64,000 nucleotides of DNA from Pecten maximus (taxonomy: Eukaryota). Shown here one piece after another: positions 49,658-55,890 of this stretch; positions within the stretch are counted from its first letter, which is position 1, and each line of letters begins with the position of its first letter. The DNA lies in contig NC_047019.1 of the NCBI RefSeq assembly GCF_902652985.1, forward strand, positions 33,108,001 through 33,172,000, read 5' to 3'. A program made the translations under genes and the position numbers. Under the pieces are notes generated by a model. That model ran no database searches. It was not told the origin of the DNA and was given only the letters and a program-made list of their open reading frames with translations.

Positions 49658-52600
49658 TTACTTTGGAGACAGAGACAGATTATGTATGTGTCGGAGGTTT
49701 GTAAGCCTAGAGAAGGTAGTAGTCCTCCCTCTGACGTCGACACTGACAATGACGTCAGCCACCGTATCGGCCACTCTGAGTACATGATACAAAACACCAT
49801 TGGTCTGGTCAAATCCATTAAATATTGATCCTCCATAGTATCGCTCAAATACACCTGGAACAAGCATACAAAATGTTGTGATACTGCTGCTGGGAAATTC
49901 GTTAAAATAAAAAAGAAACTTAATCCATTGCATAGAGACATTAACGCATTTGTCCTATGTCTGTGCCTACCTGGTGGGGAGATCTGGAAGAGTGGCATCA
50001 CTGTACCTAACACAGGGTCGATCCTAATCAGACTCCATGCTGGCCTCTTCTCGGAGTACGAACCCTCAGGTGCCACAGCATATAAAAAGGCTGTAGATAG
50101 ATATATACAAATATGATTATTGGAGTTCCTACCTTGAGAGTCATACACAACGGGGAGTCATACAAACATTGGAGTCATACACAACATGGAGTCATACACA
50201 ACGGGGAGTCATACACAACGGGGAGTCATACACAACGGAGAGTCATACACAACATGGAGTCATACACAACGGGGAGTCATACACAACGGGGAGTCAAACA
50301 CAACGGGGAGTCATACACAACGGAGAGTCATACACAACATGGAGTCACACACAACGGAGAGTCATACACAACAGGGAGTCATACACAACGGAGAGTCATA
50401 CACAACATGGAGTCATACACAACGGGGAGTCATACACAACGGGGAGTCATACACAACGGAGAGTCATACACAACATGGAGTCACACACAACGGAGAGTCA
50501 TACACAACGGGGAGTCATACACAACGGGGAGTCAAACACAACGGGGAGTCATACACAACAGGGAGTCATACACAACGGGGAGTCATACACAACAGTGTCT
50601 ACCAGAATTAACCTATTATCAACGACATCAATGAACGCTGTGTGGAGAGGGCGAGGGGTGAGAGTGGACAGGGGAGGGGTCGATGGGGGGGGGGGGGGGG
50701 GGGGATGGGTTAGAGGGGGGGGGATAGAGAGGGGGGAGGTAGAGAGGGCATGGGTTCTCCTGTTTCTTATGTCTCCTTTGTTGGCGCTCGGGCACAAGCA
50801 ACATTCATTGGAGCATTGGAATCGAGCATATCTTATTCGAGGTTTCTCCAATTATGTAAGCAAACACTTGAAGAACCCATTTTCTTCAGGCCATGATGTG
50901 CCAGAAGCATGCTATTCATATAATAATAGGCCTTCAGATAAGAAATTGGCTGCAATTTCAACAATCCTCTATTGTAAGATGCATTTATGTCAAAATTAAA
51001 GTCTTCGGTGCTTTATCAAAATTGTGAATTTCATTAAATTACCATGGGCTTCACCTTAACTGAGGTAACCGTTCAGACCATTGTTACTATTAACTCCTGG
51101 TTCGATATAACAGAAGCGGTAAACATCTATGATATAAAACACACCGACAGGTAACACGAATATAACATTTCATTGTCCTTCTTCATCCAATAAAGTGATT
51201 CATCAGTGTTCATGTATTACATTATGTAGTATAATAATACTGTAGTTTGTATACTCGGATGTCCTTTCTGAAGTTAAAGGTAAAGCTTTATTGATGTTAA
51301 CGCGGAAACAGACACCATTAAACGACTAGAATGATATGACTGTATCAGAAATAAGAGTGCTACTCTATACTCACGTGTCTGTGGTCCAGGACGGTAGACG
51401 TGGATCGACATAAACGTGTAGTCTGATTTTTGAACTGGCACCATTTTGATAAAAGATCTGAAGCAAATACAATAAATCATCAATATCCCTCGCCAAATCT
51501 ATTCATATCTTATTTTCTTCAAATGAAGGTCTAGGCAAAGCAAACTTTAAAAGATATGGCAAATACAACAACCATAGCAAAAACGAAGGTTAGTTGGTTC
51601 ATATATCTATCAAAATGCTTCAGGAAGCAAAAATAACAGACATCCGGGCTGATACCTGCCCTATATTTTACAGCCGATTAGATTTACTTTTGTGCCGCCA
51701 AAGGGCTTCTTTTATGTCTAAAATTACAAAGATATTGGATATCTGCTATATTTCATAATTATTTCCAGAAAAATGCGCCAGCTATTCGTATACAGCTTTC
51801 GATTTTATGATAATATATCTGAAAAATAGAGAATAAATGTGGGTGAAACCCCAAAATTTAAATGACGCTTCAGCTGTATTTAATTAACAGTTGTATGAAA
51901 CGAGATTACACGTACTGGTTGAAGAAGTTGTAGACATATATTCTGGCGTCCAAAGTATCGGGGGTATTTTCGTTACCCATCAGAACAAACAACTCTCCCG
52001 AGACTCGGTCCATGCTTGCCCACTGGAAGTTCACGAACAGGTTTTCAGTGTCCGGACTCCTGTAAATCTGTTTGTACACCAAGCCAGTTCCTGGTACGTA
52101 TGTTATCTGACCAAGGATGAAGTGGAATGTGCCTAACACAAAAATAGCAATAATGATAGGCGAGTTAATACCCAATTATGTTAAATGGTCAACCGTTAAA
52201 TCGTGTATGAAATTTAAATTATTTGCATGACATAATTAGAAATTTTAAAACATTTTTAATAACGTTTTTTTAATCTATAGTTAAACGTCATACGGGTAAA
52301 TAAAGTTCACAGGAACAGTTCGGCAACGCAGGATTGTAATATTGGGTACATTGGTAACGGTCAGTCGGTCTGAATCTTAACTTTCATTAAAAAACATTGA
52401 AGTTGAAAACAATTGGTGACTCATCATATCTGGGATCAGATTGGTCGTTGTGACATGTGTTTGACCTACCTGGTTTCTCCTTATTCTCTTGGATGCCAAA
52501 AGAGACGTATGTTCGTGGTTTTACATATTCTAGGGCATTGATTGGGACGCCGTCAAAGCCGTGGAGGGCCGTGGTGAGTTCCAGCTTTCCATTATTTGTG

Positions 52601-55600
52601 AATATCACCATGACTTCACTAGCTACATTATCCATGGAACCACCATGATGATAAATTGTCAGCATTTCCGATTGTGTAGGATTAAGAGCCGCAATGCCAT
52701 CCATAAGAAAATTTGGCTGCTGGAATGCGGCTCGTCTTGAGGAACGTGTTAAGTCAACTCCAATATTAAACTCGTTTAGCGGCTGTACTACTCCTAAGTC
52801 CAATGATACATTGACAAAGTGCAAACGATCCGGTTCAAATTCGTTATAGGCAAGTCCTTGTAGATTAAAAGAAGCATCAGCGTATTCATGCATTGGATAC
52901 TCCATTTGAAGTTCTGTTGCCTTCTGCAGTGTTCTGAAGTTTGGATCAAATGGAGCCGACATCCTGGTTTTGTGGAATGGACCACTGGATTTGGTGATTT
53001 TAACATCAGCACATTGATAGAAAATTGTCTCTCCGGCTTTATGAGATTGATAGCGGGCTCGTATGACGCAGTGGTCACATTGGATGTTTGGTGCCGTCTG
53101 CAAGACAATCCGATTAAAAATATGAAAATAGACACAAGCTGAGACAAAAGCACTTCGCCGAATAAAAATGTTACCTCAGCAGTACTTGTTGTTTTATCAA
53201 TTCGATTATCAAATATCCATTACGACGTAACGACTGTCGTTCTAACTCAGTTAATGATACCCTAACACATACCAACGATACGGAAACCAAACAAATATAA
53301 CAAATATCCATTACGTCGTAACGGCTGTCGTTCTAATTCAGTTAATGATACCCTAACACATACCAACGATACGGAAACCAAACACATATAACAAATATCC
53401 ATTACGCCGTAACGACTGTCGTTCTAATTCAGTTAATGATACCCTAACACATACCAACGATACGGAAACCAAACACATATAAAAAAAGTTATCAATTAAT
53501 TAACCAAATCTTATCAGATATCCTATGTAATCTTATAGGATATATCATCTAAATCATAAGATAATCATATAATAAACAAGATATCTTAGTAGTATCTAAT
53601 TTGGTTCAGGACTGAATCAACATAGCTCCATGGACAACTTGGTTTGCCATACATATTGGTTAAGGCGATTTTATTACACAGAAAAGGAAAGATGATAGCC
53701 TTTAAATCAAATTGGCGTTTGTCGCGAAAATTGGTTGTCATAAGAATATTGTGCTTACTGAAGCTAAATATCAAGAAGGAAAAGGAAATGTTTCACCCTG
53801 CTGTCCTTATACGTTCCAAATGAGTATGGTCCCGCTGGACACATATTTACTTCTGATCTATTATGGCGTGAAGCTACATGAACTTTTCATAACGGATTCA
53901 AAAGAACACACTTTTACTTTGAAGTTAGATGAACAACATGGCCAATAGTCTTTGTTTAGTTATATAGATTACCGGAAATTCCATGAGAACAAATCATGTC
54001 ATTCCATTGGCCGACCTGTTTTCTCTTCTAACGAGGCTGAATCTATTGAAGTCATTCATTTTCTATTTAGAATTTATCTGTGCTTATTTCAAAATTTATT
54101 TACACGGGATGATTATTACCAAGCCTTATAAACTATTTACTAGTAACAAGATAGTAATATCACCATTTCTGTATTAGATACTCAAGGGCTTAATTAAATA
54201 TCACGACTTCAGCTTAGATACTCAAGGGCTTAATTAATCCGTTTAGATACTCAAGGTCTTACTTAGATATCACAACTTCGTTTAGATACTCAAGGGCTTA
54301 ATTAGATATCACAACTTCCGTTTAATAGCACAACTTCCGTTTAGATACTCCAGGGCTGAGTTATATAAAATAGCTTCCGTTAGATACTCAATGGCTCAAT
54401 TAAAAATATTACGACTTCCGTTTAGATACTCCAGGGCTTAACTAGATGTCACAACTTCAGTTTAATATCACAACTTCCGTTTAGATACTCCAGGGCTGAG
54501 TTAGATATAATAGCTTCCGTTAGATACTCAATGGCTTAATTAAAAATATTACGACTTCCGTTTAGATAATCCAGGGCTTAACTAGATATAATGGCTTCAG
54601 ACAAGATAATATAGAGCATACTAGAATGTCACAAGACCTGGGTATTAAATACATAGATGGTGCATATACAGTCAAATTGTCCTAACGAGACACTCAGTAG
54701 AACCAAGCAAAAAGTGTCTTAATAAATAAATGTCTAATATAGAGATTATCAATTTGGACCAAGTAGAGTGGATGTTGTTAAATATGGGCCAAGCTGAAGT
54801 AAATACCAAGTTACGGTCATATTGATATTCAACTCAATTATTATAATGTATTCAGCACATTACATACCATTGTACTTTAGCAATTGAAGTGTAATGTATA
54901 ACTTTAATGTTGTAGACTTACAATGACTGCTGTGTAGTTTTGTTGGTGATCCTGTGCGAAGACGTATTTGTCAGGGACAAACGACAGGAGGGTGAAGTTG
55001 TCACTGTCTACTGGTGCAATGCTGATGTCCATAAACCCTGAAGTAGATATTCGAAATGACTAAAATTTGATCAGACACTACGTGCAATTATGTACTAGTG
55101 GCTAGAACATAGATTAAAACATTAGTCTACAATCGCCATCAAATATAACCAAACACCAACTCAATCATATTATTCCTTCGATTTTAATTGAGGACTTCAA
55201 GCTAGAGATATTATCATAGAAAACAAACTAAGAAAACCTAGCAATCATCGTCTGCACTTAATAGGATAATTTAATAACTAATCTGAAGTTTTCTGATGTT
55301 TTATATGGGTTAGTCGGCTTACAGAAGGTTTTTCATAAAAGACCCAATAAAACTCAGGAATTTTCGGATTATTCTTCGACCTACCTGGGTACCCGACTTC
55401 GTAGTGGTTAAAATTCTGTTGCCATTTTATAAACATTTGTTGCCCTCCCGCAATTATCTGTAGATTGCTGGTCTCTGCTGGCATCCCTCCGCACGGGGCA
55501 CCGTGTCGAAAACATGTGTGGCTTCCCGCCTAGAGAATGTGCATGTAATGAATATTATATTATTTTGTACGATGTAAAGTTAGTTATGTCCTATTTCCAC

Positions 55601-55890
55601 TAGTCTGATTTATATTCTGAGGATGACCTTTATTTGACATATGAAGCAGGGTACCTTTTGATATTCTCCGTTGTATCTAATAAATATGAATTGAATGCTA
55701 AGTCATACGTCAGTGCTTGAGACAGAACGTAATGTATCAAATAGGAGTATTCTTAAAATGTAACGATAAATATTCTTACCGATGTGATGTCCATATCACC
55801 CCGTTGACGCGGTGAGATCAGACATAGGTGAGACTGACAGGTGTTTAGGAGGCACAGTAGTAGTAGCAGCTGGACACACAGCATCTTCAT
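49658..55890 (-). CDS. Secreted protein with an N-terminal His-brace LPMO-like domain and probable C-terminal beta-propeller, 8 exons, ~538 aa
   Basis: Exons in transcript order: 55780-55890, 55385-55529, 54922-55037, 52470-53097, 51916-52132, 51375-51457, 49971-50090, 49658-49854. All introns are GT-AG and phase-consistent; total 1617 nt. Signal peptide MKMLCVQLLLLLCLLNTCQS is followed by HLCLISPRQRG...PCGG...WQQNFNHY...PNIQCDHCVIRARY...IFYQCADVKI. Minus-strand AATAAA at ~49402-49407. The gene model is well supported; the function is inferred. Confidence 0.85.
50137..50593. repeat. 17-bp intronic minisatellite (~27 copies)
   Basis: Unit ggagtcatacacaac(gg/at). Confidence 0.96.
53210..53481. 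repeat. 91-bp tandem repeat x3
   Basis: aaatatccattacg... starts at 53211, 53302 and 53393. Confidence 0.95.
54174..54600. repeat. Degenerate ~40-bp intronic tandem repeat
   Basis: Recurring ttagatactcaagggcttaattagatatcacaacttccgt. Confidence 0.85.

Follow-up and report, generated by a model that had tools for sequence, protein, structure and literature searches.

The scallop gene LOC117327830 (Pecten maximus) raises two linked questions: what kind of secreted protein does it encode, and could a histidine at the start of the mature chain belong to a copper enzyme? Within the window (the whole stretch of 64,000 nucleotides that was analysed), rebuilding the locus from sequence gives an 8-exon gene on the minus strand at 49658-55890, with GT-AG boundaries at every intron and an open frame of 538 aa closed by one terminal stop; the translation agrees in every residue with P0056, annotated by NCBI as "uncharacterized protein LOC117327830 [Pecten maximus]". 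Spliced contigs from four runs in four studies (X1 is an RNA library by its record; the other three are taken as RNA on the tool's guess) match the six junctions of exons 1-7 exactly, and the seventh junction fits an RNA-contig loose end at 49969 that reads the first bases of exon 8. We conclude that the scallop locus is a real, expressed gene for a secreted, soluble two-domain protein.

Table 1. Exons, candidate site residues and domains of LOC117327830 in window coordinates.
Feature	Coordinates	Strand	Content	Support
Exon 1	55780..55890	-	ATG, predicted signal peptide (aa 1-20), His21 codon 55828-55830, start of putative His-brace domain	exon 1-2 junction in contigs of four runs
Exon 2	55385..55529	-	aa 38-86; Cys43, Cys50, PCGG, WQQNFNHY; His79 codon 55404-55406	RNA contigs
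Exon 3	54922..55037	-	aa 86-124; middle beta-sandwich strands; Asp108, Gln114, Asn119	RNA contigs
Exon 4	52470..53097	-	aa 125-334; end of putative His-brace domain, linker helix 176-190, first propeller blades	RNA contigs
Exon 4, motifs and candidate site residues	Glu147 codon 53029-53031; Phe150 codon 53020-53022	-	CDHC 131-134, His143, Glu147, Phe150, FYQCAD	
Exon 5	51916..52132	-	aa 334-406; propeller blades; conserved N368, W371, GNEN 386-389	RNA contigs
Exon 6	51375..51457	-	aa 406-434; propeller	RNA contigs
Exon 7	49971..50090	-	aa 434-474; propeller; aligned Ser-Pro-Gly positions (APEG in scallop protein), W452	RNA contigs
Exon 8	49658..49854	-	aa 474-538, TAA stop 49658-49660; last blade (YYGG, H-x-HNL)	contig loose end, identity to P0056
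Predicted mature, putative His-brace (LPMO-fold) domain	52990..55830 incl. introns	-	aa 21-160	structure model, fold search, sub-threshold Pfam/NCBIfam matches, hhalign to AA15
Modelled six-bladed beta-propeller	49661..52881 incl. introns	-	aa 197-538	AlphaFold model; Foldseek and VIA matches to YWTD, Kelch, NHL and TolB propellers

The original prediction placed a 20-aa signal peptide before a mature start at His21, and the sequence and its homologs support this reading. Residues 1-20 comprise a K-containing start and a Leu-rich core, with Cys at -3 and Ser at -1, immediately followed by His21; the -1 position is A, G, C or S in all 35 aligned homologs, the -3 position is S, A, C, V, T, I or G, and His21 itself is kept in 34/35. 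In the AlphaFold model residues 2-15 are helical and the fold begins at the His. From the (-3,-1) rule, to which the site conforms, together with this conservation, we infer that cleavage occurs between S20 and H21 and would leave His as residue 1.

The structure of the N-terminal domain was modelled for P0022, a family member 45% identical, over the equivalent of residues 21-160 of the window protein. The model (pLDDT 79) is a compact LPMO-type beta-sandwich containing the immunoglobulin-like core common to LPMOs. When it was compared by VIA-align with 48,161 chains, the 18 best rows were all LPMO or LPMO-like (Z 13.2-8.9), headed by TdAA15A (Z 13.2, rmsd 2.8, 131 aligned residues), LaX325 (Z 12.0), BtLPMO10A (Z 11.3) and AA11 (Z 11.1), and the post-signal His of the model aligns with chain residue 1 (His1) of the LPMO matches. 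Foldseek returned 45 matches at E <= 0.001, those listed being almost all LPMOs. The N-terminal ~140 aa, as modelled for this family member, are shown to fold in silico as an LPMO-type beta-sandwich remotely homologous to AA15 and AA10 enzymes, as had been proposed from the motifs.

These motifs are all present on the minus strand as originally quoted (PCGG 49-52, WQQNFNHY 73-80, CDHC 131-134, and IFYQCADVKI 149-158), and they lie far beyond chance, since the family is recovered at E values down to 1e-289 and its key residues are near-invariant from jakobids to amphioxus. The six cysteines 23, 43, 50, 131, 134, and 153 are invariant in the family, as are Asp108 and Asp155 in the aligned homologs. 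Like His21, His79 and Phe150 are each retained in 34/35 homologs; both histidines, whose conservation the original prediction had singled out for checking, are lost only together, in P0070, where His21, Asn76, His79, Gln114, Glu147, and Phe150 have all changed while the six cysteines, the other invariant residues and an intact open frame remain. By hhalign, the family profile pairs with the scallop's own canonical AA15 exons (94% probability, E 1.2e-7), placing His79 on the copper His of the AA15 'A-N-H' motif, CxxC on CxxC, and FYQCADV on FYGCADI; Phe150 falls on the F of the FY-x-C-x-D strand both in scallop AA15 and, by a weak HMM match, in AsLPMO10B, and we take this F to be the axial residue in AA10. 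Conservation and the modelled fold together suggest that the N-terminal domain of the scallop protein is probably copper-binding.

The probable beta-propeller that had been noted downstream emerges as a confident six-bladed propeller occupying the C-terminal ~340 aa. The AlphaFold model (pLDDT 86, pTM 0.84) has ~24 strands between residues 201 and 537, with pLDDT mostly >84 across the block and loop dips at 191-200 (68) and 241-250 (52). Six-bladed domains of the YWTD (ROS1/LDLR), Kelch, NHL, and TolB kinds head the structural comparison, with Z 18.6-14 across 245-295 residues and, for the Foldseek matches listed, E 4e-9 to 6e-7. The scallop domain shares their blade number and overall geometry, but the match list is flat, at 5-13% identity, with no family outstanding; no Pfam repeat matches the propeller of the scallop protein, and DUF6923 (PF21959), which has no match in the scallop protein itself, gives a marginal match in 2/35 members (threshold E <= 0.01), the better one reaching 6.2e-7 and falling a little short of 27 bits. 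The model thus shows residues 197-538 as a generic six-bladed beta-propeller. In the literature searched, we did not find an LPMO-type domain joined to a six-bladed propeller elsewhere.

To which known family does the protein belong? LPMO_10 (PF03067) has no match in the scallop protein at E <= 0.01; 16/35 relatives match at that threshold, and 2 of the 10 with scores listed pass the 23-bit cut-off. A genome-wide PF03067 scan of the scallop matched at least 29 canonical AA15 exons at other loci but not LOC117327830. The only Pfam match of the scallop protein is BIM1-like (PF20238; E 2.7e-5, residues 20-164 on profile positions 2-127), scoring 25.1 bits against a curated cut-off of 27; at E <= 0.01 the model matches 22/35 members, and P0017 (27.8 bits) is the only one of the ten with scores listed to edge past the cut-off. 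The model for SCE4755 (NCBIfam NF043005), a bacterial, uncharacterised family, matches all 35 members (best E 2e-12), including the scallop protein over residues 47-156 (E 1.2e-8; 35.1 bits against a curated cut-off of 75), and two SCE4755 clusters are among the protein-language-model neighbours; because ordinary AA15 exons of the scallop score the same with the SCE4755 model (29-40 bits), the match shows kinship at the clan level only. The scallop protein reaches no curated cut-off of the three models scored (LPMO_10, BIM1-like, and SCE4755), and the family is unclassified.

A closer comparison with AA15, represented by Thermobia domestica TdAA15A (PDB 5msz), reveals both likeness and difference. 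Both families are secreted, have His at the first mature position (predicted in the scallop protein), share the same beta-sandwich, and occur in invertebrates, including Pecten maximus. However, AA15 has a catalytic domain of ~195 aa with ten conserved cysteines (PMC5823890), whereas the scallop family has six and a domain of ~140 aa, without the long stretch that separates His1 from the core in AA15; C-terminal extensions in AA15 are mostly assigned as carbohydrate-binding modules (PMC5823890), in contrast to the propeller modelled here; and the candidate axial residue is Phe, where TdAA15A has Tyr.

The "unclassified animal family" of the original prediction must be divided: unclassified it is, no publication on the family having been found in a literature search, but animal-specific it is not. 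The same two-domain architecture occurs in Acanthamoeba, Andalucia, Gefionella, Ancoracysta, choanoflagellates (Salpingoeca), a sponge (Sycon), echinoderms (starfish), and amphioxus. A quick ML tree of the family follows the species tree, the pattern scan turned up no bacterial relative, and the family appears to be old and vertically inherited among eukaryotes. Its distribution in protists and choanoflagellates argues against a shell-specific role. Carriers with an assigned organism are free-living heterotrophic protists and marine invertebrates (16/35 aligned rows lack an organism name), and some of the protists are known phagotrophs.

What might such a protein do? We lean, with modest confidence, towards a secreted His-brace copper enzyme of the LPMO type, with a propeller partner domain, that handles ingested or matrix glycans. 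Specifically, i) signal-peptide cleavage would expose His21; ii) the amino group and side chain of His21, with His79, would coordinate a single copper ion as a histidine brace; iii) Phe150 would occupy the axial position of the copper site, and Glu147, with His143, Asn76, and Gln114, would form a second sphere; iv) O2 or H2O2 plus a reductant would allow this copper-dependent redox enzyme to oxidise a carbohydrate polymer; and v) the propeller would bind substrate or another ligand, a role that is a guess since the propeller has no specific relative. The protein would probably work outside the cell or in the endolysosome, on ingested prey or on matrix glycans, a setting favoured by the nature of the organism-assigned carriers, which are heterotrophic protists and marine invertebrates. 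More tentatively, and on balance doubtfully, the proteins could form a new family of auxiliary-activity-type copper enzymes as old as the early eukaryotes, in which a minimal LPMO domain is permanently coupled to a propeller whose part is either to orient a non-classical substrate or to deliver electrons or H2O2: a self-contained oxidative machine with which phagotrophs and filter feeders would process ingested or matrix glycans.

Several observations speak against LPMO catalysis. The domain lacks the long L2 region, to which AA10 and AA15 owe much of their flat substrate face; its size resembles that of the non-catalytic X325 proteins; and BIM1-like matches are slightly commoner in the family than LPMO_10 matches (22 vs 16 of 35). 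A His/Glu/Phe trio lies directly ahead of the last strand and is reminiscent of the second-sphere trios in active AA10s (PMC11137697). The Glu-to-Phe spacing is 3 residues in the scallop family against 2 in AA10 enzymes.

The protein might instead bind copper without catalysis, like fungal X325/Bim1 or bacterial CopC, capturing the metal or passing it on, either at the cell surface or within the endolysosome, with the propeller docking it to a partner, for example a transporter. We consider this unlikely, although LaX325 (PDB 6ibh), a small His-brace beta-sandwich of similar size (~140 aa in the scallop protein), is the second-best structure match (Foldseek TM 0.55-0.57), BIM1-like is the sole Pfam match, and X325/Bim1 proteins are tied to copper uptake in reviews that report no detected polysaccharide activity (PMC7924993, PMC10952591). 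That Pfam score nonetheless falls under its cut-off, and it is AA15 enzymes that rank first in the structure search and give the one significant profile-profile match. X325 is fungal and GPI-anchored (PMC10952591), whereas the scallop protein has no GPI-type tail, since it ends in a folded propeller blade (the last strand, 530-537, plus one residue, with no hydrophobic tail). In X325 an Asp carboxylate serves as fourth equatorial copper ligand; the scallop family has two invariant Asp residues, Asp108 and Asp155. Moreover, the conserved Glu near the candidate axial Phe is lost along with the brace, as expected of a catalytic second sphere.

Another reading, which seems to us improbable, is a copper protein that is redox-active but acts on no polysaccharide: an oxidase whose H2O2 or other reactive oxygen would serve antimicrobial defence or power other enzymes, with a propeller that binds microbes or a partner. 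The short domain without an extended binding face and the constant contact of the carrier organisms with bacteria are consistent with it, as is the AA16 LPMO-like structure 7ze9 among the good matches (Z 10.7; Foldseek E 7e-5), AA16 proteins being, reportedly, oxidoreductases that boost AA9 LPMOs (PMC10088020); yet the likeness to AA16 is no better than that to AA10, AA11, or AA13. Very improbable, finally, is a lectin- or adhesion-type binder whose N-terminal domain no longer holds metal and whose conserved histidines are structural. P0070 persists as an intact open frame after losing both histidines, many six-bladed propellers are pure binding modules, and LPMO-fold proteins that have lost catalysis exist; but the first mature His is retained in 34/35 homologs across eukaryotic supergroups and was lost only with His79, Phe150, and Glu147, a joint loss hard to explain by structural need because P0070 keeps the cysteines of the fold and the other invariant residues.

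To our knowledge there are few histidine-brace copper proteins, and most eukaryotic families described so far, AA15 apart, are fungal. If the His-brace reading is true, the copper centre would be pushed back towards early eukaryotes, the architecture being common to Amoebozoa, jakobids, malawimonads, choanoflagellates, sponges, and bilaterians; LPMOs would gain a domain combination that was not found among them in the literature searched; and the question of the uses of His-brace chemistry outside biomass decay would widen. Should the 140-aa domain prove active, so minimal a catalytic domain would be of practical interest. The natural loss-of-site variant, P0070, already defines the candidate site residues: His21, His79, Phe150, Glu147, Asn76, and Gln114.

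LOC117327830 is a single minus-strand gene at 49658-55890 of the window; its eight exons were rebuilt from the raw sequence and the ORF list, all seven introns between them have GT-AG borders, and the exons, joined in silico for a frame check and for comparison with P0056 (the NCBI uncharacterized protein LOC117327830), give a spliced frame of 1617 nt, or 538 codons and one terminal stop. A search of 1.84 billion proteins with exon 4 yielded a small family of 55 cluster representatives, and a search with the best exon-4 match recovered P0056, which is identical to the gene model across 538 of 538 residues; P0056 was the reference for whole-protein searches, and the window exons were the queries for exon searches. 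Two repeat-rich proteins from the exon 4 search were rejected as relatives: P0027, whose sole match was an autotransporter repeat (PATR), and P0048, which gave scattered sub-threshold families only.

Coordinates of the LOC117327830 exons and of related scallop genes
Feature	Sequence	Position	Strand
Exon 1	window	55890-55780	minus
Exon 2	window	55529-55385	minus
Exon 3	window	55037-54922	minus
Exon 4	window	53097-52470	minus
Exon 5	window	52132-51916	minus
Exon 6	window	51457-51375	minus
Exon 7	window	50090-49971	minus
Exon 8	window	49854-49658	minus
Tandem paralog (loci L002, L004, L006)	scallop genome G000, C5	33183238-33200687	minus
Single-exon His-brace gene	scallop locus L007	1998-2486	minus
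Single-exon His-brace gene	scallop locus L009	2058-2546	minus
Single-exon His-brace gene	scallop locus L008	2004-2489	minus
Single-exon His-brace gene	scallop locus L010	2004-2486	minus

The gene is expressed, and its splicing agrees with the model. Spliced contigs from four sequencing runs in four studies (one run recorded as an RNA library, three guessed to be RNA by the search tool) match the predicted exon borders at the six junctions joining exons 1-7, each at the exact model coordinates; the loose end of these contigs at 49969 consists of the opening bases of exon 8, which fits the seventh, and one contig of 1986 nt covers exons 1-7 and continues into apparent exon 8. Run X9 has an in-frame 12-nt deletion at window position 52729 (exon 4, about residues 247-251), within a loop modelled at low confidence in the first blades of the propeller, and run X10 has five single-base differences within exon 4; these are likely to be alleles.

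The encoded protein is a secreted two-domain protein. Residues 1-20 combine an early Lys with a Leu-rich core and carry Cys at -3 and, just before His21, Ser at -1; among 35 aligned full-length homologs, position -1 is always A, G, C, or S, position -3 is S, A, C, V, T, I, or G, and the residue after the predicted cleavage site is His in 34. Cleavage exposing His21 is thus predicted from the (-3,-1) rule together with homolog conservation. The motifs quoted in the original prediction are all present (PCGG at 49-52, WQQNFNHY at 73-80, CDHC at 131-134, and IFYQCADVKI at 149-158), and cysteines 23, 43, 50, 131, 134, and 153 are invariant in the 35 homologs.

A full-length AlphaFold2 model built from the 35-sequence alignment (mean pLDDT 86, pTM 0.84) consists of a signal helix, a beta-sandwich with strands within residues 22-159, a helix at 176-190, and about 24 strands at 201-537. 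Fold searches with the whole model were dominated by six-bladed propellers (ROS1 and LDLR-type YWTD, Kelch, NHL, and TolB), with Foldseek E values of 4e-9 to 6e-7 among the matches listed and VIA Z scores from 18.6 down to 14 over 245-295 residues; the match list is flat, at 5-13% identity, and a protein atlas search with the propeller gave scores of at most 0.87, which are leads only. By the model and these searches, the C-terminal strands, described from the sequence as blade-like, do form a six-bladed propeller, one with no specific relative.

Because the propeller fills the whole-protein fold lists, we tested the N-domain separately by way of P0022, a naturally truncated family member of 261 aa that is 45% identical and was modelled from the same alignment rows (pLDDT 79). 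Against 48,161 representative chains, the best 18 matches of the P0022 model were all LPMO or LPMO-like, among them TdAA15A (5msz, AA15; Z 13.2, rmsd 2.8, 131 aligned), LaX325 (6ibh, X325; Z 12.0), BtLPMO10A (AA10; Z 11.3), 7p3u (AA11; Z 11.1), JdLPMO10A (5aa7, a minimal AA10 of 142 aa; Z 10.8), 4opb (AA13; Z 10.7), and 7ze9 (AA16; Z 10.7). In most rows, including the top four, the alignment starts with the post-signal His of P0022 on chain residue 1, which in the matched LPMOs is the copper-binding His1. Foldseek agrees, and the LPMO-like N-domain proposed from the sequence is borne out at the level of fold.

Kinship to solved LPMOs is apparent by fold and hidden to plain sequence search. In Pfam, the window protein matches only BIM1-like_dom (PF20238), over residues 20-164 (E 2.7e-5; 25.1 bits, below the cut-off of 27); at E <= 0.01, BIM1-like is matched by 22 of the 35 members and LPMO_10 (PF03067) by 16, a few barely exceeding a cut-off, and an exon-by-exon scan gave a faint BIM1-like hint in exon 4 only, the exons being too short. 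The SCE4755 model (NCBIfam NF043005) matches all 35 members at about 35 bits, short of its cut-off of 75, but ordinary scallop AA15 exons score 29-40 bits on the same model, so we rejected SCE4755 membership and take the match as clan-level kinship only. A PDB sequence search with exon 4 alone found no match, and family profiles found only a marginal one to AsLPMO10B (E 0.55 and 0.041), whose weak alignment covers the last strand, as in the AA15 alignment. The AA15 alignment, obtained by profile-profile comparison with four scallop AA15 exons (94% probability, E 1.2e-7, residues 51-156), places His79 on the His of the AA15 "A-N-H", CxxC on CxxC, and FYQCADV on FYGCADI; TdAA15A binds copper through His1 and His91, and its Ala89 lies two residues upstream of the latter (PMC5823890). 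We conclude that the N-domain has an LPMO fold with remote homology to AA15. The scallop domain has about 140 residues whereas AA15 has 195, has six conserved cysteines rather than ten, and lacks the long region following His1, and these differences set it apart as a compact branch of its own within the AA10/AA15-type fold. Pecten maximus also has a large canonical AA15 family: an LPMO_10 scan of the genome gave at least 29 exon matches above cut-off elsewhere, several of them in local clusters, and none at LOC117327830; examples lie at C1:38507224-38507694, C8:27339085-27351998, and C2:52911911-52963063.

In the candidate copper site, His21 would bind one copper ion through its amino terminus and its side chain, with His79 as the second histidine ligand. 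Most N-domain deviations at near-invariant positions come from one member, P0070 (Logan assembly, 535 aa), which lies on a long branch within bivalves and has His21->Gln, Asn76->Gly, His79->Tyr, Gln114->Lys, Glu147->Gln, and Phe150->Leu; it retains an intact open frame, the six cysteines, and the remaining invariant residues. The two histidines whose conservation was in question are thus changed together in P0070 and in no other member, and the His/His/Phe/Glu set is both conserved and co-lost. An abandoned copper site would be expected to lose exactly this combination of the two putative brace histidines, the axial aromatic residue, and a Glu close by, and judging by its sequence P0070 has probably become copper-free and taken on a new role. 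The stretch His143-x3-Glu147-x2-Phe150 is reminiscent of second-sphere trios in active AA10 enzymes (His-Gln-Tyr in MaAA10B, Arg-Glu-Phe in ScAA10C; PMC11137697), although the spacing differs.

The family is of ancient origin. Relatives with an organism name belong to scallops, other bivalves, gastropods, the annelid Owenia, the starfish Acanthaster and Patiria, and amphioxus, and exact look-ups extend the list to the sponge Sycon, two Salpingoeca choanoflagellates, Acanthamoeba castellanii (ACA1_027500), Ancoracysta twista, the jakobid Andalucia godoyi, and the malawimonad Gefionella; all are of equal length with the same two domains. A quick maximum likelihood tree (SH-aLRT support only) places protists, choanoflagellates, sponges, deuterostomes, the annelid, and molluscs in order, which fits vertical descent with many losses. 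These searches gave no vertebrate, arthropod, fungal, or plant hits, which is not proof of absence; a pattern scan of 185,579 genomes confirmed no bacterial relative, and a word-index search returned eukaryotic proteins only. The tandem paralog, 11.2-28.7 kb past the window end, matches 8 of 8 exons at 71-94% identity (exon 4 at 91%, about 90% overall), so the family has been locally duplicated in scallop. Single-exon scallop genes of about 160 aa encode a signal peptide and His-brace domain only; they carry H-x-C-x-x-x-P-x-QRG, CGG, NLDH, and F-x-QCAD, have no CxxC pair, HKPGE motif, or propeller, and had orthologs only in other scallops and one marine metagenome protein.

With moderate confidence, we consider a redox-active LPMO-type enzyme acting on glycan the most likely function; the substrate would be bound or positioned by the propeller. 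A Bim1-like copper carrier would suit the small domain and the BIM1-like matches, but homology to AA15, conservation of the Glu, and the absence of a GPI tail weaken this reading, and we consider it unlikely. Likeness to AA16 proteins would accord with an oxidase that produces H2O2 without a substrate, a reading we regard as distinctly improbable; least probable is a metal-free binding protein in which the conserved histidines are structural.

As to what an LPMO-type enzyme might act on, the carriers with an organism name, which 16 of the 35 aligned rows lack, are free-living heterotrophic protists and marine invertebrates, and some of these protists are known phagotrophs. The lifestyle of the named carriers favors a part in processing ingested or matrix glycans over one in shell formation; shell-less carriers count against the shell-chitin role entertained in the original prediction, and we set aside a shell-specific role for a protein common to shell-less protists, a sponge, starfish, and amphioxus.

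The gene is annotated without a name. Literature searches with ten locus identifiers or accessions of family members, and with DUF6923 (PF21959), found no paper that names any of them; none was found that joins an LPMO-type domain to a propeller, and none of the papers listed pairs LPMO with the carrier taxa. The family in a 2017 HMM survey with bivalve matches is a different one, mostly fungal and marked by an S/T/A-rich linker (PMC5320794). We regard the scallop protein as belonging to a new LPMO-fold family that is compact, has a partner domain both new and fixed, and reaches unusually deep into the eukaryotes.

Two introns of LOC117327830 are rich in repeats. Intron 6 contains a minisatellite (50138-50593; 26.8 copies of the 17-bp unit GAGTCATACACAACGGG) followed by a G-rich tract (50644-50723), and intron 3 contains repeats at 53210-53486 and 54238-54598 (a 91-bp unit in three copies at 96% identity, and a nested 39/140-bp array). 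Also within intron 6, at 51007-51036, contigs of about 30 nt occur at very high depth in the three runs whose contig pieces are listed, X1 and X9 among them, and bin depth there is high in all four runs; these contigs are probably a common repeat word of another transcript from outside the gene.
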